From assembly GCA_964234715.1 (NCBI GenBank), contig OZ174275.1: a stretch of DNA of 64,000 nt; one strand, given 5' to 3'. Positions 15,680 to 47,886 of the stretch are shown here, piece after piece. This DNA is from Podarcis melisellensis. Its lineage: Eukaryota. Positions within the stretch are counted from its first letter, which is position 1. Each line of letters starts with the position of its first letter. The notes beneath the pieces were generated by a model, which did not search any database, was not told the DNA's origin, and was given only the letters and a program-made list of their open reading frames with translations. The translations under genes were made by a program, and so were the position numbers.

Positions 15680-16700
15680 AGAACATGGGGTGAGGTGCTC
15701 TCAATTGCTGATGATATCCAGTTCTGCTTTCCTGTAACATCTGAATCAGGAGAGGCTGTGCAAGCTCTGGACTGGTGCCTGAATTCAGCAGTGAGCTGGA
15801 TGGGGGACAATAAACTGACTCTGAATCTTGGCAAAATGGTGGGATTGTGGGTGGTTCCCTAGTCCAGGTAATTGGTCAATTTCCTGCTTTGGAAGGGGGT
15901 CATCCTTCCCTTGAAAGAGCAGGTTCATAATCCAGGGCTTCTCCTGGATCCATCTTTATCACTAGAGACCCAGATGACCTCAGTGGCTAGGAGAGCCTTC
16001 TGCCAGCTACAGGTGGGAAGACAGCTACCACCATATCTGCACCAGGGTAGCTGGACCGCTGTCATCCATGCTTTGGTAACATCCATCTGTATTTGGGTGT
16101 GCTGCATTTTGGGTTGCCCTTGAGGTTGGTGCAGAAGCTGTAGCTGGTGCAAAATGCGGCAGCTGGACTGCTCACTGGGGCAGGATATTGCCAATGCATC
16201 ACCTCACTCTTGAAAGATTTGCAGTGCCAGTTAGCTACTAGGCTATTTTCAAAGTGCTGATTTTGGTGTTTAAAGCCTTATACAACTTGGGACCAAGGTG
16301 CCTGAAAGACGGTTTCACTCCTTATACAGTGGTACCTCGGGTTAAGTACTTAATTCATTCCGGAGGTCTGTTCTTAACCTGAAACTGTTCCTAACCTGAA
16401 GCACTACTTTAGTTAATGGGGCCTCCTGCTGCTGCCGTGCCGCCGGAGCACGATTTCTGTTCTCATCCTGAAGCAAAGTTCTTAACCTGAAGCACTATTT
16501 CTGGATTAGCGGGGTCTGTAACCTGAAGCGTATGTAACCCGAGGTACCACTGTATACCCAACCAACCTCCACACTCTGTAGGTGAAGGCCTTCTGCAGCT
16601 ATCAACGTATCAAGTAGCTAGTTCCACACAGTGTAGGAATTGGGCCTTTAATGTTGTAGCAACTTTGGGATTCCCCTCCCCTTGAATATTAGCTGTCATC
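15680..16700 (+). mobile_element. L2-clade LINE ORF2 fragment (RT end and C-terminus), interrupted by a MITE
   Basis: ADDIQ (YADDTQ-like), VIHALVTS, LVQNAAAGLLTG, ITSLLKDL, FKVLILVFKAL motifs with stops and frameshifts. Confidence 0.88.
16327..16552 (+). mobile_element. pogo/Tigger-type MITE copy 2
   Basis: TA-CAGTGGTACCTCGGGTTA...TAACCCGAGGTACCACTG-TA; the L2 host continues on both sides. Confidence 0.95.
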
Positions 16701-20751: not shown

Positions 20752-20890
20752 NNNNNNNNNNNNNNNNNNNNNNNNNNNNNNNNNNNNNNNNNNNNNNNNN
20801 NNNNNNNNNNNNNNNNNNNNNNNNNNNNNNNNNNNNNNNNNNNNNNNNNNNNNNNNNNNNNNNNNNNNNNNNNNNNNNNNNNNNNNNNNN
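20752..20890. other. Assembly gap (139 N)
   Basis: Run of N. Confidence 1.
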
Positions 20891-28334: not shown

Positions 28335-28418
28335 TTCTTCCTTCTCCCCTCCATCCACAGTAGAGGTAGAGGGTGTTTCTTCCTTCTCCCCTCCATCCAC
28401 AGTAGAGGTAGAGGGTGT
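28335..28418. repeat. Perfect 42-bp tandem duplication
   Basis: TTCTTCCTTCTCCCCTCCATCCACAGTAGAGGTAGAGGGTGT x2. Confidence 0.97.
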
Positions 28419-30030
28419 TTGTTTCTTTTTTGGAGGGGTAGGGGGACAGTCAGGGGTGGGATGGTGAGAGAAGATGACATTCCACCAACCCCCTTGTGCT
28501 GGCGCTTCTCCGCATCCAAGCCATAGATGTCTATAACGCTTTACTAGTTCTTTAAATATTAGACCAAAAGTCAAAGACAGAATCATTTAAAGGTACTGAT
28601 TTATTTGTCAAGGATTTTCCTTCTTTGAGTAGTTGCTCCCTTTGATATTTGTGTCACTGATGCCATAGCTCTACAAGGTAATGTATTCTGTATCTGCAGA
28701 GATATCCTGGCCACAGAAACCTTCATTTAGGTAGAAACAAGCAAGATATTTTTTTTTGTGTGTGTGTGTGTGTGTGTTTCATCCTTCTGCCCCTTTATTT
28801 ATTTATTTTAAAAAACCTCACTAACTTTTACACTGTTCACACCACACTGTCCCTACTGGAAAACATACGTGCAGTTTTATGGTTCAGTTCATGATCCCAA
28901 TTCTCACTACATTTTATTTCCTATTTTTTGCTTCTCGTAAGTGTTTTTTCTCCAGTGTTTGAGTACTTCAGTTTGGCAGTAGGTCATGGAAAATAATCTT
29001 CCTTTTTGAAAAGCTACTGAGCAGGGGATGTATAACTTCTGTGGGTCTGTGTAGTGCGGAGCACAATACTGTGAATTGTCCTGTTCCATGAATGCAAGCA
29101 AGCCATCTCTGTTAAGTGAAAGGGTTGGATCCAACAGCAGTTCCCAATGGTGAAAGTGTCTGTGTGGAGGGATGATATTTTTTTGCTGAGTTCACCTTCT
29201 TCCTGCAAGCCTCCAGCACCACTTCTCATAATGTTCTGGAGCACCCCCACCCACCCACTATCTCCGGTGCAGGTTATCAGAGAGACATTTATCCCATGTG
29301 CAGAAGCCAGTTTTTCTAAACACAAGAGGATGGATATAAAAATGCTCATTCACATGAAGGGGGTGTTTTTGCACATTGAAGGGCTGTTTACACCTGCACT
29401 AGAAAGCTGTGTGAGACAAGTGAACCCCAATCCAAATATGTTCTTTTAGTTGCACAAGCAGTTGTGCAAGGTCTTTCAGAAGCTTGAGTTACTGACATGT
29501 CAAGGATCCTCTTTTGGACCAATTCTGCTGCGCTTTTACTCCTCCCCCACTCATTTTCTCTTTTTTTCCTAAGTGTCAAGCTATGAAAAAGCATTTCCTT
29601 TATGCTATCTAGCATTCACATGTATTTTTAATTTTTTTGCACGTTGATCAGGAGCCAGTTTGACCTAAACAGCCCAACGGTCCTGCTGAATTATTATAGC
29701 AAAAAAATTGTTGGGTGATACATGGTTTGGTCATGTACAATAATTTTTGGAATCCATTCAACTGTTGGCTCGTACAACAATAAAGCCAATGGATCAATAG
29801 TTCTTATAAAGTGATTAGCTTCAGTGAATAAGAACCTGGAGAAAATACTGAGTTAAAGGTTAAACCGTAAATAAGTTGGGAAATGCCACCTGAAGAGTCT
29901 AGGCATACAAATATCCTGTTATTTTTACATCTGTGTATTGTGTATTGCATATTTTAAATGACTGCTTGCTTCCAACAGATTTTCCTTTAGTTAAAGCAAA
30001 ATATAGATGTGTTTATGAATGAACTATACT

Positions 30031-31680: not shown

Positions 31681-33334
31681 TGCCTGGCTTGCATGAATTT
31701 CCAGCAGGAAATGAGGTCTGCCAATGTGATTGTGGTCAAACATTTACTTATTCTTGGAGCACACTGATTATTAACATTCATTCCCATCTGGCTTTCAGCC
31801 TCAGTTTTGCCTTGGAGAGTCAATGGATGTTGGGAGTGCAAATCTGCTACTTCTCCTGCATTCACTTCAACTGGGTCAGTTCAACTACTCAGCGAGTCAC
31901 CTCCACAAGGTTTCTTTTAGTTGTGACTTGTACATTCTGGTCTTCTTCATGGAGCCTGTGATTCCAGTAGATGATTTCTTTCTGCCTTTGGAAATTGGCT
32001 GGAACTAAGACAATAAATAAGTAACACAGATTAATTAAATCAACTTTCACTCTTCTTTGGTACTAAGTTATTATACACGAAATTGTCCAGATCTGATAAA
32101 TCTGACAGGTGTAATCAGTGGTTGTTTAAAGGCATTCAGTACCATTTCCCATTTCTGTGTAATGAGCTCTTTTGAGTAAGAGCCACCTTCATCAGATGCG
32201 ACTGGCGACATGGGTTCTGGCCATAAATATATTCATGCCACAGTAAACCAGTTAATTGCTAAGAACACCGTGTTCTCATACGATTTTTTTTTTTGGTCAC
32301 TATAAGTTTCATTCTTTTGTCTTGGACCAAAATCTTTGTTTCCAAGGCCATTACTATACTCTAAGAGCTCTATTAAGTCCCTAGGCAATAATGCTGTGAT
32401 GTCTGTATAATTACGCTATCATACATTTAATAAACTACAGATTGCTCATTTTCTGAACACATAAAGTGCAAATTGCAAAATGCATTTGTCCTTCCCTATG
32501 CTGAACACTTACAAGTACATGGTCTTATTCCGCTCCACCTTCAAAATTTAAAAGAGAGGATATATCTAGTTCATGTTTATGCTGTAGTTTGATTAAAGTT
32601 GGAATTGTTTGTTTTTGTGTGTGTGCAGCATTTTTGAGATGTGGGGGGATGTTCTTTTGGCTATTGTTGAGTCTTCAAATCATAGTGCCAGATTCTTCCA
32701 CAATGGAATGACTGAAACAGAAAAATTGAAATGATAGCAATTGTAAATGTTTAAATATTTTGTGGTATTTCAAAGAGATACAGAGGTTTGTCCCATTCTT
32801 TAGCACCACAAGTGAACCAGAAGCGCACCTCATATCAACAAGGAGTTCGGACTTCCGTGTATAGTGGGCCTAACTCTGTTGAATCCCCTCCCATCAGAAA
32901 TCAGGCTGCTGAGTTTCAGGTATAGAAGTTTTTATTTCAGTAGGCCTTTGCATTTTGAACATTGCTCTAATGTTTCTATTTTCTGATGTTTTAGCATATG
33001 TTTTGAACCTTGCACATTGTGTGGTTTTGTTGCTTCCCTTCTGTAAGTCATTTTGAGACATAGTGAAAAGTGGGGTGTGTGAATTCCTTAAATGAATGGA
33101 TAAATTCAAAACGTCTCATTTTCAATTTCTCATAAGTAAAATAATCAGGTAGTAATATATGTCATTCTAATGTTCCACACAAGTGCTGTCCTGGAGATGG
33201 AGAGGGTAGAGAATCAGACCTAAGAACAGGCATTTATCTGGATGCTCAAAAGGTCACTGGCAAATCTCATCTGGTAAAGCAACCAGCTATGCTTTCAACA
33301 TTTAATTTTCCCCAATATCATCAAAAAACAAATA

Positions 33335-33576
33335 CAGTGGTACCTTGGGTTACATACGCTTCAGGTTACATACGCTTCAGGTTACAGACTCTGCTAACCC
33401 AGAAATAGTGCTTCAGGTTAAGAACATTGCTTCAGGATGAGAACAGAAATTGTGCTACGGCGGCATGGCGGCATCAGGAGGCCCCATTAGCTAAAGTGGC
33501 ACCTCAGGTTAAGAACAGTTTCAGGTTAAGTACGGACCTCCGGAACGAATTAAGTACTTAACCCGAGGTACCACTG
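33335..33576 (-). mobile_element. pogo/Tigger-type MITE copy 3
   Basis: Both TIRs intact with TA TSD; opposite orientation to copies 1 and 2; extra 16-bp GGTTACATACGCTTCA module. Confidence 0.95.
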
Positions 33577-35987
33577 TATAGATCCATACTTTTTTTTTGT
33601 GGGTGGGGGAAGCAGTATGTTGAGATGCAATGCATTGTTGACAACTTTGTTATCTAGTCAGCAGACCACTTGGCCTGTGGCACATTAAGAAGCTTCTAGT
33701 ACATACTCCCTTTTCTTCCCTTTGTCTCCTTCTCCTTCCTCAATAAACAATCAGAGAAGTGTGAAGGCAAATTTCCAGGCAGTCCTCGGTATAATTCTTC
33801 TGTGCTGCTTTGCAATCTACTTTCGAATGTGGTGGGATAATAAATCCACAGTGTGTGTGCAAGCCCCTGGGTGAGCATATAACCCGCAAGAAGTAGTTTT
33901 CTGTTGTAAACCGATTACCTCTAAGCAGGCAAGAAAAGGAGGGTTAGTTATTCCCACAACTCCTAGCCATAATGAGGTTGAAGGATGAGCTGTGGGATAC
34001 ATAATTTGCCGTGTTGTAATACTTTCAAAACTTGTTTGGGCCTGTAAGATAGTTCACTTGATATTTAGGATTGAAATAAAATCAACCAGGTGCCAGATCA
34101 ATGCTTTTGGGCTGCGGCATATACCCATGGCAGTGTCGGGGGCATTTCCCAGCCAAAGGAATGCACACACAGTTAACTCTTTATTGTCAAAACTGACACA
34201 GTAGTTTCTATGGCTCTGAATACTCACCCAGGCTAGCATCTAGGCAACTATTCTCAGGTCTGCACTCTATGGAAGAGTTGCAGCAACAGGGGGGCCACAC
34301 TCCCCTCCATCAGTTTATGTACCCCCCCCCCACATGGGCTGTTTGCACACAGCTCCCTCTACCCATCTTTCTTCAATCTCCTCCTGCAGTGGTGTGGAAG
34401 CATATAACCCTTCACTTGCCTGGCCTGTCTCTTTCTCATCTTTTGACCCTGTTCTGTGCTCCTACCTCCAGCTCTGAAGCTTCCCTTGCCTCTCACTCTT
34501 GCCTCCTGGCTGGTACCATTCCCTACAAATCACTGACCCCCTCTCTTGATTCAGACTCTAGCCTCCCTTCCCCCTGGTGCACACTAATCAGCATCTTGCC
34601 AGCCCCTGACATGAGGCATCCAACTAACACATTCCATAAGTGCAAAGATTTGTGCTTGTGCAAAAAAATCACTGCTCTGCCCTCCACGATTCCTAAACCT
34701 GTTCTAGAGGTTATCCCAACCTTCTGGAGCAGATTTGGGGAGGGTATGGGGGTGCACAGGAAGAGAAGAGGGGGAAATGTTCTGTTGCACGAGTACAAAT
34801 CCTTGTGCTGGCATGATGTGTTAATTAGATACTACCCACAATCTCCGCTGTGTATAGAGTCGCTTCATACGTGCAGTTAACTCAGGCAAATTCAGGTATA
34901 TGTACAGTACTTGGCAAAAAAGTGCTCTGCAATAGGAAGCCTACTGCAACAGTTCCTGCAAAGGCATCTAGGAATCTTTTGTTTTCCTTGTTTCTCCTTC
35001 CCTCTAACTAGCATCCCACCCTCCAATTTTAGGATTCACATCCCCCCCCCCCAAGTGCTGGAAGGTCCAGCAGTTGCCCATAGAATATGGTGGTGGTTAG
35101 GTCAGCCTTTAGGCATCCCTGCAGGGCTTCCCCCCAGCTTGCCAAGTGGTAGCCACTGCCTGTCATGGCCCCACCAGCTCCTGAGCCGTCTCCCGGTCCA
35201 CCAGTTCACCTAGCTCTTGCTTGCTGGCCTCAGGAAGCCACAGTGACTGAGGGAGGAATAGGTGGAGGCATGGCCTCTGTGTAAACAAACAGTTGGTGCC
35301 CTCAGGATAGACAGGGAAGTGAGAGTGAACCAAAAGACTCCTTATAGCCCAGGGTCCCCTCCCCAAGCACAGGGCATTCATAAGCGGAGTGTACTTTGAT
35401 GAATTTTCAAGCATACTGTGATTTTTACTATTTGTGTTTTTCGCTTTATTCGCTGAATTTAGAACCTACTCCCCACGTAAAAGCTGATTCTGCTGCACTC
35501 TGTGGATGTTAATATAGGAAAAGAAATCCAACTAAAATAAGAAAATGAAGCCTGTCAGCTATTTACAGCTGGGTAGTTACTGAATTTTTCTAATAATGAT
35601 GCAGGCTCTTCGTAAAACTGCTTTTGTTTCTGTTTTAACTAACTGAGTAAATTAACTCCCAGGCACTCATTTTGACTCAGAACACCATGTGCCCATGGAT
35701 CTCCTCAGTGTGGAGGCTTCCTCATATGTTTCAAATGGAGACGGGAGCTCTACTGTTTGGTTATGTGATTACAGGCATTTCATAGCTCCGGTAAAAATTG
35801 TATGTCCCATGCCAAATGCTCTGGGCAAGTTTCTTGACCTTTTCATTCACTTAAAAAGTTCTCCAGCATTTTGAAATTATTTATACCCTCTTTAGGCTCT
35901 TCAGCTGGGTTTAATTCTTGCCGAGCAAATGTTGCAATTGCAGCTAACACAATTCATTCAATTATTTGATTGTATCAATATGCAATA

Positions 35988-36229
35988 CAGTGGTACCTTG
36001 GGTTACATACGCTTCAGGTTACATACGCTTCAGCTTACAGACTCCGCTAACCCAGAAATAGTGCTTCAGGTTAAGAACTTTGCTTCAGGATAAGAACAGA
36101 AATCGTACTCTGGCGCTGTGGCGGCAGCAGGAGGCCCTATTAGCTAAAGTGGTGCTTCAGGTTAAGAACGGTTTCAGGTTAAGAACAGACCTCCGGAATG
36201 AATTAAGTACTTAACCTGAGGTACCACTG
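35988..36229 (-). mobile_element. pogo/Tigger-type MITE copy 4
   Basis: Both TIRs intact with TA TSD; 242 bp, same subtype as copy 3. Confidence 0.95.
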
Positions 36230-37319
36230 TATACTTGTACGCTTCCTTCTCTGCAAGGAGTGTTTCATCTTATTATTCTACTGTCTCCAGAAAGACTTTT
36301 TTTGGGGGGGTGAGTAAATAGAGAGAATAATGGTTTTAAATTTGCTCTTTCTTTTGGCACATGACCAGTGGTTGTATTGATGGAGTCAATGATTAAAAAT
36401 ACAGTTATAATGAACACAGCTATTTTTTTTTTGCTTTGTTTTATTTCAGTATGAAAGAGCAGAAAAATAATAATATAAACCCAAACAAGTTTTGAAAATA
36501 TAACAGCAGTGTACATTTCTGAAAATACAGAAATGATTTTTTAGAAGTACATTTATCATGGTATTTCTTTTAATTTGCACTCCTGCTGTACTACAAATGT
36601 AATAACCATCAAAATGAAAAATGCAACAGATTGATAATACCATTGAGTTTTAATTAAAGCACTGAATTGAAAAAGGCCCAGATGGATAACAGGATAATGT
36701 AGTTATAACCCTGTTATGAAAAATGCTGGGCTGCCAGTTATAGCATCTTATAAATAAAATGTATGCCAAAATAACATAGTTTTTTTTAGAAGACTACCCA
36801 AAAATTAATCATTTAAGTCTGCAAAACAGATGGTTTCTCTGTTTTATTTGGTTTGTCTGAAAGGCACAGATCTCTTTAAATCAGTAAATGTTCCATTCCT
36901 CCCAATTGCCCAGATCCCTCTCCAGCTACTCCATCCAGTTCTGTCACTACTGGTTCACAGTTGTAAAATCTCTGAAACATTAAACTCTGAAAGGTCAGTA
37001 GGTGTTTGTATCTGACTATTTAGCATACTGAAATACTAATGGAGTTTAAAACAGAAAGCAAGTACTGCAACCATACGTCTTGTCTACTTAGAGGTATGCC
37101 CAATTGATTTCAGTGGGATCTACTCTCCAGTGGGTGTGCATAGCATTGCAGCCTGAATATCTCATGATGGCTATAAAACCTGTGTCTCCATCGCAGGTGG
37201 CATTGTGCCCTGTTCAACTATTGCTATCTGTGACATTGCTGTCACTAACTATATTAAAGGAAGTCACCATCCACATCTGAAAACCACTCAGCGATGAAAG
37301 CCATATGCCACTGCTATGT

Positions 37320-43822: not shown

Positions 43823-45900
43823 CTCAGACTGCAAGGTGTAAGGAAAGATCAATAGTTGCTTCTGAGAGCAATTTTTAAAATATTATGTAAAGAAATCTGT
43901 TTGCTGGAGGCGATTTTGACTCCCGTCATGGGGAATAACTAAGGGAATAGTTGCTATATTTCCATCTGAAAAACCCCCAGAGCTTTTCTGTTATATTGGG
44001 GTGGAGAACTCCAGGCCCAGGAGCCAAACCTGCAGTCTTCTCTACCTGGCCTCAGAACCCTCACGCAGTGAGGGCCCAGATGTTCTTCAGATTGTAGCTT
44101 GGCTTCTGTTTAAATCCGTGCATGAAAAGCAGCTTGCCCTGCACCCTTCGGCCCATGAATCCACACCCCACACCTCAGCTTTTGCATAGAAAATTACAGT
44201 AATTGCCTCAACTGTCTCATGAATCCTAGCAGGGTCCAAGAATTAAGCAAATGTTACCTACTGCCTTTCTTGCTCTGCTTGCCGTTGCACAGTTTTGCAT
44301 CATCTAAAACTCATTTAGTTGATTGATATAGCAATAAAAATACATTTACTAGCAGCCAAGATAAAAAGCTTTGCTAAACAGTCTTTGTCAAATACGAATC
44401 TTCTTCACATGATTTCATCTCCCCCCCTTTTTTTAAAGGAAAAAAAAGACAAGGGCTCAGTAGGGAGGAAAAAAACAGGATACCTGACAACCTTACAGCA
44501 GATGAGAGATTGTTTTCAGCATGGGAATATCAATTCATAGAATTTAAAGCGATAACATTTTGTATGATAAGGGCTGGAAAACAAACCAAAACCAGCAGGT
44601 AGTAACCATAAATGTTTCAAAATGATTCAACAGCAATGCATAATAGGGCCAGCGCAAGACATGTCGATGTTTGAGCCAAGGGGAGTCACCACTCTCCCTC
44701 TTCTCCGCCATGGCTCCCCCTTCTCGCTCCCTGTTTACTTCTAAATGTTTTCCTCCTGTTAACTTGGAGGGATTGTGCCACCCTCTCTTTGCCCTGTCCC
44801 CTCTACCTTGCTCTGAGGATGCAAAGGTGGGCTTTCCTCAGAGCAAGACATTCTGGGAGAGGAGGCTTAGGAGAGTGCTATTTGGCCACAAAGGTAACTT
44901 TTTATTATTTAGAAAAAAAATTGCACCTTGCCCATGGTGCTTAACACTGAGTAATGGCTTGTGTGGGAAGCCATGTATTGGCCAAGGGCTCTGATTGGTG
45001 GCAGCAGCAATGCACTTGCTGCTGAACGGTGTCTCAGCACAAATAGATAGCACCAGTCTATAGCTGTACGAAATCTATAGATTCCATAGATCTGTGGGCC
45101 AGACCGTTCCATTTTGGGTGAGTGAAAACGGCACATTTCCCCTGTGGATGGAAGCAGCCCCACTGCGTGCCTGTAACTACAATTGGCACCCGAGGGTCTG
45201 CTGGGAGGGCAGTGACTGGCAGTGCAGTGAGGAACCCTTCTTACTCCTCAGGGCCCCAGCCAATGCCCAACCTGACTGACTGCTGGCACCTGATAATGGA
45301 GACCTGATAGATGCAGTTTTCTTCCCTGAGTGCGCAGCTGCTGTAATGCACATTAGTTTGGGGCGTGTTGGAGGGAGGGGTGTGACATTCTGTGATACTG
45401 AGCCACAGAACATACCGTTGGATGGTACTGCAGGTTATGTTGCTCTCTGTCATATTTGAGCATTTTATACAAACTCTTGCAAGACATCCTTAGGAAGTCA
45501 ATTTTAAGTATCTCAGTGTCTTATCACAATGGAAGAAGACCTCTAGCACCCGAATGAACTCATTAAAGGGCAGATCCTGCTGTGCACCATCCAGCCACAG
45601 CTTTGTGCTTAATTCAAAACAGTAACCTGTGTGGGAAGAGGCTTTGTGTGTGAAAGGGGCAGTTGCGTCTGTTTCAAAAGTATATCAGTGTGGTGTTGCA
45701 TTGCGTAGGCAAAGGAAAAGTGAAATAGCAATTGTGAAATCTCCTCCCTTCCCTTGAAGAAAATGATACGGTTGAAATCTACTCAGCTTCGATGATACCC
45801 TGTCATCTGTGAGACACAGTAAGAGGACAGTGATTTGAAGGGAAAAGGTGGTGCAAATCAGTGATCTCTCCACCCACCCTGCAAGAAAATATCTTTAATA

Positions 45901-47230
45901 CAGTGGTGCCCCGCTAGACGAATGCCTCGCAAGACGAAAAACCCGCAAGACGAAAGGGTTTTTCGGTTTTTGCGACACTTCGCTAGACGATTTTCCCTAT
46001 GGGCTTGCATCGCAAGACGAAAGCCCATAGGGAAATCTCGGGGACCTTTTTTTAAATGCTGGCGGTGGGGAGGAAAGCCTTCCCCCCCCTCCGGACTTCA
46101 GAAGAGGTCCAGGAAGGCCGGCGGGGGCGAAAGGCTTTGCTCCCCACCGCCAGCATTTTAAAAGCGGTCCGGGATAGCAGGGAAGCGCTTCCCGCTATCC
46201 CGGACGGCTTTTGAAGGCAGGCAGGGGGGGCAAAGACTTTTGCCCCCCCTGCCTGCCTAACCGGGGGCTTTTAAATCGCCCCGGGACTGTCCGGGGCGAT
46301 TTAAAAGCCCCCGGACGGCTTTTGAAGCCTCCCCCCCGCCCGGCTTCGGGGCATCATCCCGATGCCGGGCGGTGGGGCAGGAACGCCTCCCCCAGCCGCC
46401 CGGCTTTGGAACGATGTCCCGAAGCCGGGCGGCCGGGCGGGAAAGCCTCCCCCCCCGCCCGGCTTCGGGGCATCATCCCGATGCCGGGCGGTGGGGCAGG
46501 AACGCCTCCCCCAGCCGCCCGGCTTCGGGGCATCGTCCCGATGCCGGGCGGTGGGGCAGGAAAGCCTCCCCCAGCCGCCCGGCATCGGAACGATGTCCCG
46601 AAGCCGGGCGGCCGGGCGGGAAAGCCTCCCCCCCCGCCCGGCTTCGGGGCATCGTCCCGATGCCGGGCGGTGGGGCAGGAACGCCTCCCCCAGCCGCCCG
46701 GCATCGGAACGATGTCCCGAAGCCGGGCGGCCGGGCGGGAAAGCCTCCCCCCCCGCCCGGCTTCGGGGCATCGTCCCGATGCCGGGCGGTGGGGCAGGAA
46801 CGCCTCCCCCAGCCGCCCGGCATCGGGGCATCGTCCCTATGCCGGGCGGTGGGGCAGGAACGCCTCCCCCAGCCGCCCGGCATCGGGGCATCGTCCCGAT
46901 GCCGGGCGGTGGGGCAGGAAAGCCTCCCCCAGCCGCCCGGCATCGGAACGATGTCCCGAAGCCGGGCGGCCGGGCGGGAAAGCCTTTGTCCCCCCTGCCT
47001 GCCTTCCCAGGGGCTTTTAAATCGCCCCGGACAGCGGAGAAGTCCTCCGCTGTCCCGGGCGATTTTAAAATGCCGCCCGCCAGAAGAGGTCGGGGGAAGG
47101 CTTTTTCCATAGGAACGCATTAATTGATTTTCAATGCATTCCTATGGAAAACCGTGCATCGCAAGACGAAAAACTCGCAAGACGAAGAGACTTGCGGAAC
47201 GAATTAATTTCGTCTTGCGAGGCACCACTG
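45901..47230. mobile_element. Intact non-autonomous Tigger/pogo-like DNA transposon, 1330 bp, with hairpin-rich interior
   Basis: TA(45899-45900)-CAGTGGTGCCCCGCTAGACGAA ... TTCGTCTTGCGAGGCACCACTG-TA(47231-47232); multiple subterminal CGC(A/T)AGACGA repeats; no transposase ORF. Confidence 0.93.
46327..46985. repeat. GC-rich minisatellite of 11 ~59-60-bp palindromic units
   Basis: Unit order A B A A B A B A A A B; A core GGGGCATCGTCCCGAT, B core GGAACGATGTCCCGAA. Confidence 0.95.
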
Positions 47231-47554
47231 TAATCAGAACACCAGTGGGTTTCAGTTGGTGGCTGAGCTTGAAGGAGTATACTCTTTATCACTTTCCCTG
47301 TAACTTAGGTAACTTGAGAGCTGAATCTCCTGCCCACATTTAATTTAGTAAAGCCAAAATGTCTTTTGCTTATTCCGTTTGATAAAGGGCCTTGCTCATG
47401 GTAAGACCTTGTCACATCCCTGGCATGGTAAATACCATCTTTTACCACATGGGGGAGTATTGGCAAGAAATACGCATCACATGAGACTGGCAAAGTAGAA
47501 TAGTCTTGTGATTAATCTGACCATTAACTGGTTTTAAAATAGCAGCCCACAGGC

Positions 47555-47680
47555 AATTTCAGCCCTTGGATTTTATGGTGGTGGTGGTGGGAATCTTACC
47601 TGTTCCTAATTCTGGCCTGAACCCCGATTGATTTGGGTCTAGATTTGGTTCATAATGCCTTGCAGTTCTTAACACCATAT
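47555..47680 (-). mobile_element. L2-like LINE RT fragment
   Basis: LDPNQSGFRP is the conserved LINE RT N-terminal motif. Confidence 0.65.
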
Positions 47681-47681
47681 A

Positions 47682-47886
47682 CAGTGGTACCTCAGGATAA
47701 GAACTTAATTCGTTATGGTGGTCCGTTCTTAACCTGAAACTGTTCTTAACCTGAGGTACCACTTTAGCTAATGGGGCCTCCCGCTGCCACTACACGATTT
47801 CTGTTCTCATTCTGAAGCAAAGTTCTTAACCCGAGGTACTATTTCTGGGTTAGCGGAGTCTGTAACCTGAAGGGTCTGTAACCCGA
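47682..47886 (+). mobile_element. pogo/Tigger-type MITE copy 5, right TIR truncated
   Basis: Left TIR after TA; ends GTAACCCGA, lacking GGTACCACTG-TA. Confidence 0.9.

Follow-up and report, generated by a model that had tools for sequence, protein, structure and literature searches.

Two-state variant-repeat codes are classical in human minisatellites such as MS32 (D1S8), where they are read by MVR mapping, and minute hairpin-bounded inversions of chloroplast DNA were reportedly described by Kelchner and Wendel in 1996. At single hairpins, both the inversion of loops, those of 7-8 nt included, and the repair of stems have been traced to template switching (Loytynoja & Goldman 2017, PMC5453318; Monttinen & Loytynoja 2022, PMC8794818). 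Among minisatellites, MSY1 combines variant repeats with the capacity to form hairpins (PMC2599865), and CEB1 and CEB25 are known to form G-quadruplexes (PMC3486850). Closest to the locus described here are MITEs with short internal tandem arrays from bivalves and insects, in which a palindrome in each repeat is thought to drive changes in copy number (PMC3879986), and such tandem-repeat MITEs have been reviewed as a route by which a transposon gives rise to a satellite (PMC9659126, PMC6947457).

Our analysis of one window, the whole 64-kb stretch of lizard DNA under study, places a hairpin minisatellite whose core occurs in two orientations inside an element of this general design. A limited literature search returned no description of a minisatellite whose two states are the two orientations of a single hairpin core. 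We put at roughly 0.72 the probability that the array is a non-coding internal minisatellite of a young, non-autonomous, TA-inserting transposon, in which the core was flipped by a template switch or exchange and the resulting dimer then spread. Most likely, the array is no working device but has arisen as a by-product of the miscopying of hairpins.

Anatomy of the array and orientation of its cores

The single large tandem array of the 64-kb window lies at 46325-46985 according to TRF, which assigns it a period of 60, 11.1 copies and 85% matches, and which also gives periods of 119 (90% matches) and 179 (89%). Delimited by TRF, stem motif and palindrome scan together, the minisatellite spans 46327-46985 on the plus strand. 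Anchoring on CCGCCCGGC resolves it into 11 units, which start at 46336, 46396, 46455, 46515, 46575, 46634, 46694, 46753, 46813, 46873 and 46933 and fall into two types, A of 60 bp and B of 59 bp. Their sequence along the array is A B A A B A B A A A B, which can be parsed as (A B)(A A B)(A B)(A A A B). Each unit consists of a C-rich arm (CCCCCAGCCGCCCGGC.TCGGG), a core loop, the G-rich complement of that arm and a spacer loop; the two arms alternate along the array as inverted repeats, and the loop between them is by turns that of a core (7-9 nt) and that of a spacer (12-13 nt). Of the stem motif CCGCCCGGCWTCGG there are 22 copies, divided equally between the two strands (11 each), where 0.01 would be expected. 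With tandem units inside the 10-100 bp range and with discrete types, namely two core types plus hybrids, the array has the make-up of a minisatellite. An initial annotation had described 11 tandem hairpin units of about 60 bp in the order ABAABABAAAB; TRF and the CCGCCCGGC anchoring bear out both number and order, and every core forms a DNA hairpin, with a folding energy of -21 to -27 kcal/mol. The spacer is a hairpin too, at -27 kcal/mol as DNA, with a stability equal to or greater than that of the core.

The two unit types are related by orientation. The same annotation had related the B core to the A core by reverse complementation, with 2 mismatches, and this is what we find: B differs from the reverse complement of A at 2 of 27 positions and from A read directly at 7 of 27, and at six of the seven strand-informative positions it carries the reverse-complement base (P ~2.2e-7 under random substitution). 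Its further observation that the spacer co-varies with the preceding core holds throughout, in that TGGGGCAGG follows all seven A cores and CCGGGCGGG all four B cores, a core-spacer link of 11/11. The hybrid left arms that it noted in some units are present in three, units 2, 9 and 10. Unit 2 combines a left T with a B loop; units 9 and 10 combine a left A with an A loop and form a perfect 15-bp stem in which an A-T pair replaces the T.T of the A units.

The change of orientation is confined to the core, that is, to about 21-27 bp between the 9-bp arms CCGCCCGGC and GCCGGGCGG, and the part that flips comprises one mismatched pair, the inner stem and the loop. When both strands were searched with 3 mismatches allowed, all 11 spacers were found on the plus strand, and the two spacer types, aligned in direct orientation, show 4-5 differences in about 30 letters and are never inverted with respect to each other. 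The pattern is that of a hairpin-bounded inversion, with a core flipped between 9-bp inverted arms and the sequence outside unflipped.

Because B is the complement of A, neighbouring A and B units pair over their full length, which A-A neighbours are unable to do. As DNA, the 120-nt AB dimer folds into a single hairpin that has the spacer loop at its centre (-65.5 kcal/mol, z -11), and as RNA a BABA stretch pairs over about 115 bp to form a hairpin (-224.8 kcal/mol, z -17). That long joint hairpin involves two BA dimers, units 5-6 and units 7-8 (46564-46801, plus strand), which are identical at 119 of 119 positions; the latest step in the history of the array was therefore a tandem duplication of the BA dimer. 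Palindromes made of A and B together, with arms of about 55 bp or more, should raise the proneness of the array to hairpin-driven rearrangement. Of the two structural potentials that the initial annotation had ascribed to the array, the one for cruciforms and hairpins is high, as judged from both the DNA and the RNA folds, and the one for G-quadruplexes did not hold up. No canonical four-tract motif is present on either strand, whether loops of 1-7 or of 1-12 are allowed, and G4Hunter scores attain an absolute value of 1.5 in only 3 of 635 scoring windows (maximum 1.20, minimum -1.64). We accordingly reject the reading of the array as a G-quadruplex minisatellite; duplex hairpins would, moreover, compete with any G4 in the array.

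The carrier transposon, its age and its abundance

The array forms the interior of a 1330-bp non-coding element (45901-47230) that has 22-bp inverted ends and a TA on either side. The left terminal inverted repeat, CAGTGGTGCCCCGCTAGACGAA (45901-45922, plus strand), and the right one, CAGTGGTGCCTCGCAAGACGAA (47209-47230, minus strand), match at 20 of 22 positions in the pattern CAGTGGTGCC.CGC.AGACGAA; at position 45915, nearly all other copies of the family carry an A in the reads. The two copies of the TA target-site duplication stand directly 5' of the left end (45899-45900) and directly 3' of the right end (47231-47232), as read against contigs of the empty site. Subterminal 16-bp repeats with CGCAAGACGAA occupy 45907-45954 on the plus strand (TRF period 16, 3 copies), and more of them lie at 46011, 47160 and 47176. 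This motif occurs seven times in the window, always within the element, against 0.16 expected, and we regard the repeats as candidates for transposase binding sites, which they probably are.

A palindrome scan reveals that the interior of the element is, throughout, a chain of GC-rich palindromes and hairpin modules. To the left of the array these are a hairpin of 18 pairs with a loop of 4 (45992-46035), a hairpin of 20 pairs (46160-46212), module 4 with 20 perfect pairs (46215-46258, in the stretch 46216-46284) and module 5 with 24 perfect pairs (46261-46314); to its right follow hairpins of 23 pairs (47015-47069) and 19 pairs (47103-47151). The arm motif of module 5 is found at 46266 and 47012 on the plus strand and at 46291 on the minus strand. 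By local alignment with 46216-46284, a second, direct copy of module 4 together with the left arm of module 5 lies at 46965-47030 on the plus strand; the last B spacer of the array merges into it, and the array-bearing segment is thereby enclosed between direct repeats of about 66 bp. The left part of the element also holds a nested palindrome (46042-46170; inverted repeat I4, 86% complementary). Its two arms, of 58 nt apiece, agree at 50 of 58 positions, and inside either one lies a small hairpin, the two internal loops being opposed and mutual reverse complements. This module is an unamplified version of the relation between A and B.

A TA duplication relative to the empty site, terminal inverted repeats of about 20 bp, a lack of coding capacity and a multitude of copies make the element MITE-like, and the head-to-tail array between its ends gives it the structure of a tandem-repeat MITE. 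Judged by its sequence, the carrier appears to be a non-autonomous TA-inserting DNA transposon of the Tc1/mariner-pogo kind, with a putative assignment to pogo/Tigger that is made from the ends alone. Within the 64-kb window there is no transposase, and the sequence of the element ends has two matches only. In the literature, the string of the terminal repeat matched nothing but unrelated primers. Exact-pattern scans with the terminal repeat and with the core hairpin gave 0 matches in all metagenome contigs and prokaryote genome contigs searched, and for these collections a bacterial REP-like element was rejected on these counts.

The window contains further repeats. Short TA-flanked MITEs of about 85-250 bp with the ends TACAGTGGTACCTC lie at 16325-16554, 33333-33578, 35986-36231 and 47680-47766, with a lone end at 102; their terminal motif is of the same class as that of the 1330-bp element, and their interiors are different. 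The pairs 102/16325 and 33333/35986 stand at fixed offsets and may mark segmental duplications. There is also a 42-bp tandem repeat at 28335-28427 (2.2 copies, 96% matches), and a run of 139 N at 20752-20890 represents an assembly gap or a masked stretch.

The age of the insertion was read from three public DNA runs, X1, X4 and X8, two of them sampled from the closest organism and the third from a second organism; in the flanks, all three diverge from the window by about 1.2-1.8%. Contigs of all three join 45898 to 47231, skipping 1332 bases with two letters shared, and these genomes therefore have an empty site with a single TA. It follows that the element arrived by a cut-and-paste insertion younger than the split from those genomes. 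One X1 contig ends 30 letters past the empty-site joint, and contig data of this kind cannot show heterozygosity. CpG content is a further sign of youth: its observed/expected ratio is 0.88 in the array, 0.93 in the element and 0.96 in the element outside the array, compared with 0.22-0.24 for the window as a whole and for the flanks. As an observation in its own right, the absence of the element from close relatives points to recent or ongoing activity of DNA transposons in an amniote, which is uncommon.

Youth is also indicated by thousands of contigs that are at least 99% alike to parts of the element. The family is abundant: the summed word depth reaches 1.2-5 million on the element ends, against 56-64 on the single-copy flanks, which places the ends in tens of thousands of copies. 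On the bins of the array the summed word depth is 9,000-88,000 in X1, from the closest organism, and this corresponds roughly to a few thousand 60-bp units genome-wide, by a rough conversion in which contigs can fit several places; in the second organism the array sequence is several-fold scarcer. Contigs of relatives skip the array, joining 46114 to 46989 or 46274 to 47021, and the depth on the array is far below that on the ends, so that array-less forms of the family probably exist. The join from 46274 to 47021, seen in a related organism, looks as if the segment between the direct repeats of about 66 bp were missing. In many contigs of all three DNA runs, 47228-47234 is joined to 47674-47680, that is, the right end of the family to the neighbouring TACAGTGGTACC MITE; these joins likely reflect abutting TA insertions elsewhere in the genome or the similarity of the ends.

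Origin of the two orientations and alternative readings

The anatomy described above leads us to propose a sequence of events that starts at the 9-bp arms CCGCCCGGC and GCCGGGCGG: a template switch between the two during replication or repair, or else intramolecular exchange between them, would have left the core inverted. The A/B pair would then have spread through tandem duplication of 119-bp dimers, and slippage or unequal exchange in a 60-bp register, between the shared arms, could account for the A-A neighbours and for the hybrids, which would also be compatible with the correction of stems by template switching (PMC8794818). An inversion delimited by the 9-bp stem arms would be expected to leave all spacers co-oriented, as they are. 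Against a pure flip in place, the perfect link between the B core and the variant spacer needs an extra coincidence.

That coincidence is dispensed with if A and B instead go back to an ancestral palindromic module of about 119 bp, in which each made up one arm and which was later tandemly duplicated. On this view, which we hold to be possible but on balance doubtful, an inverted duplication by fold-back priming around the A-to-B spacer would have created both orientations with no flip in place, and the 60-bp period would arise only since each arm is itself a hairpin. Besides accounting for the 11/11 core-spacer link, such a history would fit an array that opens with an A-type left arm and closes with a B unit, in which each B-to-A spacer is a fusion of the array's right and left borders, in which the TRF period of 119 fits better (90%) than that of 60 (85%), and whose freshest duplication has dimers as its unit. 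The element, furthermore, holds at 46042-46170 an unamplified module of the same design, with arms matching at 50/58 and opposed loops. It fits less well that the spacer types are never inverted and, read in the same orientation, agree apart from 4-5 differences over about 30 letters, that in the unit alignment the outer parts of the arms are slightly more alike direct than inverted, and that the centre of the palindrome is imperfect, with a bulged G and one mismatch. For the distal arm sequences, the direct and the inverted comparison come out one or two events apart, too few to separate the two histories. Weighing these points, we place the flip in place somewhat ahead of the nested-palindrome origin; both belong to the same class of template-switch error and share the same later history.

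The initial annotation had proposed an AB dimer formed by loop inversion and then expanded. The opposite orientation of the cores, and the restriction of the flip to the core, agree with the first part of this proposal, although an inversion in place is not the sole origin that fits; the expansion is well accounted for by tandem duplication of dimers, two of which are identical at 119/119 positions. A bolder version of the flip in place, in which flipping of the core is a recurrent and ongoing germ-line process in this lizard MITE family and the array is a self-propagating fragile site or dsRNA source that has spread to hundreds of loci, strikes us as improbable; if true, it would make the family a natural reporter of template switching in the vertebrate germ line.

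Turning to what the array might do, we rejected a coding role. All six frames of the array are open because the unit is without stop triplets, and its 269-codon open frame gave no match at E <= 0.001 in a word-based protein search and no Pfam family. The evidence on RNA is weak and comes from one RNA-seq run of the second organism, which is without the insertion at this locus and has fewer arrays. In that run, the array is covered by 0-2.6 reads, against hundreds on the family ends; 96% of the reads at the locus continue into unlike sequence, the ends being mostly parts of longer unrelated transcripts, and no transcription starts are seen at the locus.

These data bear on the idea that the array gives rise to hairpin RNA, by way of read-through transcripts that fold and are diced to small RNAs, which would silence the family or regulate genes. 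The hairpin of about 115 bp that BABA forms as RNA (-224.8 kcal/mol, z -17) and the presence of family ends among the RNA-seq reads of the related species speak for it. The near-empty array (0-2.6 reads against hundreds on the ends) and the 96% of reads that run into unlike sequence speak against it, as do the lack of any Rfam family in 40-53 kb and the stems of single cores, which at 15-18 bp are too short for miRNA precursors. Taken together, we judge this role very unlikely.

We attach equally little probability to the array being a mobile regulatory block resembling a CpG island, with the function of a promoter, an insulator or a methylation boundary. CpG islands are delimited in sequence by a length of >=200 bp, a GC content of >=50% and an observed/expected ratio of >=0.6. 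The array, with 659 bp, a GC content of 0.77 and a ratio of 0.88, lies within these bounds and carries 26 GC-box cores (15 GGGCGG and 11 CCGCCC) in its 659 bp. A very recent insertion is, however, equally expected to be rich in CpG, and the non-array part of the element reaches 0.96; the insertion is missing from the closest genomes, which argues against a conserved role at the locus, and the RNA-seq run of the second organism shows no transcription starts. Nothing, then, points to a host function of the array, a view that is argued from absence of evidence and from one RNA-seq run of a related species.

Least probable of all is that the length and order of the array are an artefact of assembly, a collapsed or expanded repeat: exact 119-bp duplicates are indeed the kind of sequence that assemblers mishandle, but a 659-bp array is far below the length of long reads, its units carry ordered diagnostic variants, its borders are clean and unique, the ends of the element are intact, and independent runs contain array-like contigs.

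Significance and comparison with known systems

The locus offers a clean vertebrate example of a transposon that seeds and spreads tandem repeats, and it illustrates that mutation of hairpin-forming units can change their orientation and not just their copy number. The closest available genomes lack the insertion, and for that reason the family can be called recently mobile; since it is both abundant and recently mobile, its hundreds of arrays could serve as replicate experiments on template switching, slippage and palindrome instability in the vertebrate germ line. For annotation, arrays of this kind are better masked as transposon cargo than recorded as CpG islands, genes or G-quadruplex sites.

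Like MS32/D1S8 and MSY1, the array is built of a few discrete unit types that spell out an internal code, and in all of them the hairpin potential of the unit is linked to mutation processes. In MS32/D1S8 and MSY1, the types differ by point substitutions; here they differ by orientation. Those two minisatellites are, moreover, defined by allelic variability at a single locus, whereas the present array, compared with them by its unit types alone, is dispersed by a transposon. In contrast to CEB1 and CEB25, the array has no run of four tracts of three or more G and, as a whole, falls short of a G4Hunter score of >=1.5.

The single hairpins altered by template switching resemble our array in that a loop and an adjacent mismatched pair are inverted between short inverted repeats, with the orientation outside them kept, and the hybrid units that have exchanged a T.T mismatch for a perfect A-T pair resemble the stem correction seen at such hairpins. 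The published cases are, however, single hairpins compared between species; here both states lie side by side and the flipped state has been amplified, with no phylogeny that fixes the direction of the change.

With the vertebrate MITEs derived from Tigger/pogo and Tc1/mariner (PMC9219625), the carrier shares the TA duplication, ends of about 20 bp that start with CAG, a non-coding interior and a very high copy number. It differs from Tigger/pogo (PMC9219625) in that no transposase with matching ends was found here, the assignment to that group being made from the ends alone.

The nearest parallels are DTC84 of the clam Donax trunculus and the pearl-related elements of oysters (PMC3879986), which, like the element described here, are short and non-autonomous, with inverted ends and a target duplication, and which likewise enclose a central short tandem array with a palindrome in each repeat and ordered repeat variants. 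Unlike these, our element resides in a lizard and duplicates TA in place of AA; its unit of 60 bp, with 77% GC, is almost wholly palindromic, and the rest of its interior consists of hairpins as well. DTC84 as described does not have the two orientations of one part of the unit that are found here. By these comparisons the element is a tandem-repeat-containing MITE, a kind already known, and the flip of the core is the trait that sets it apart.
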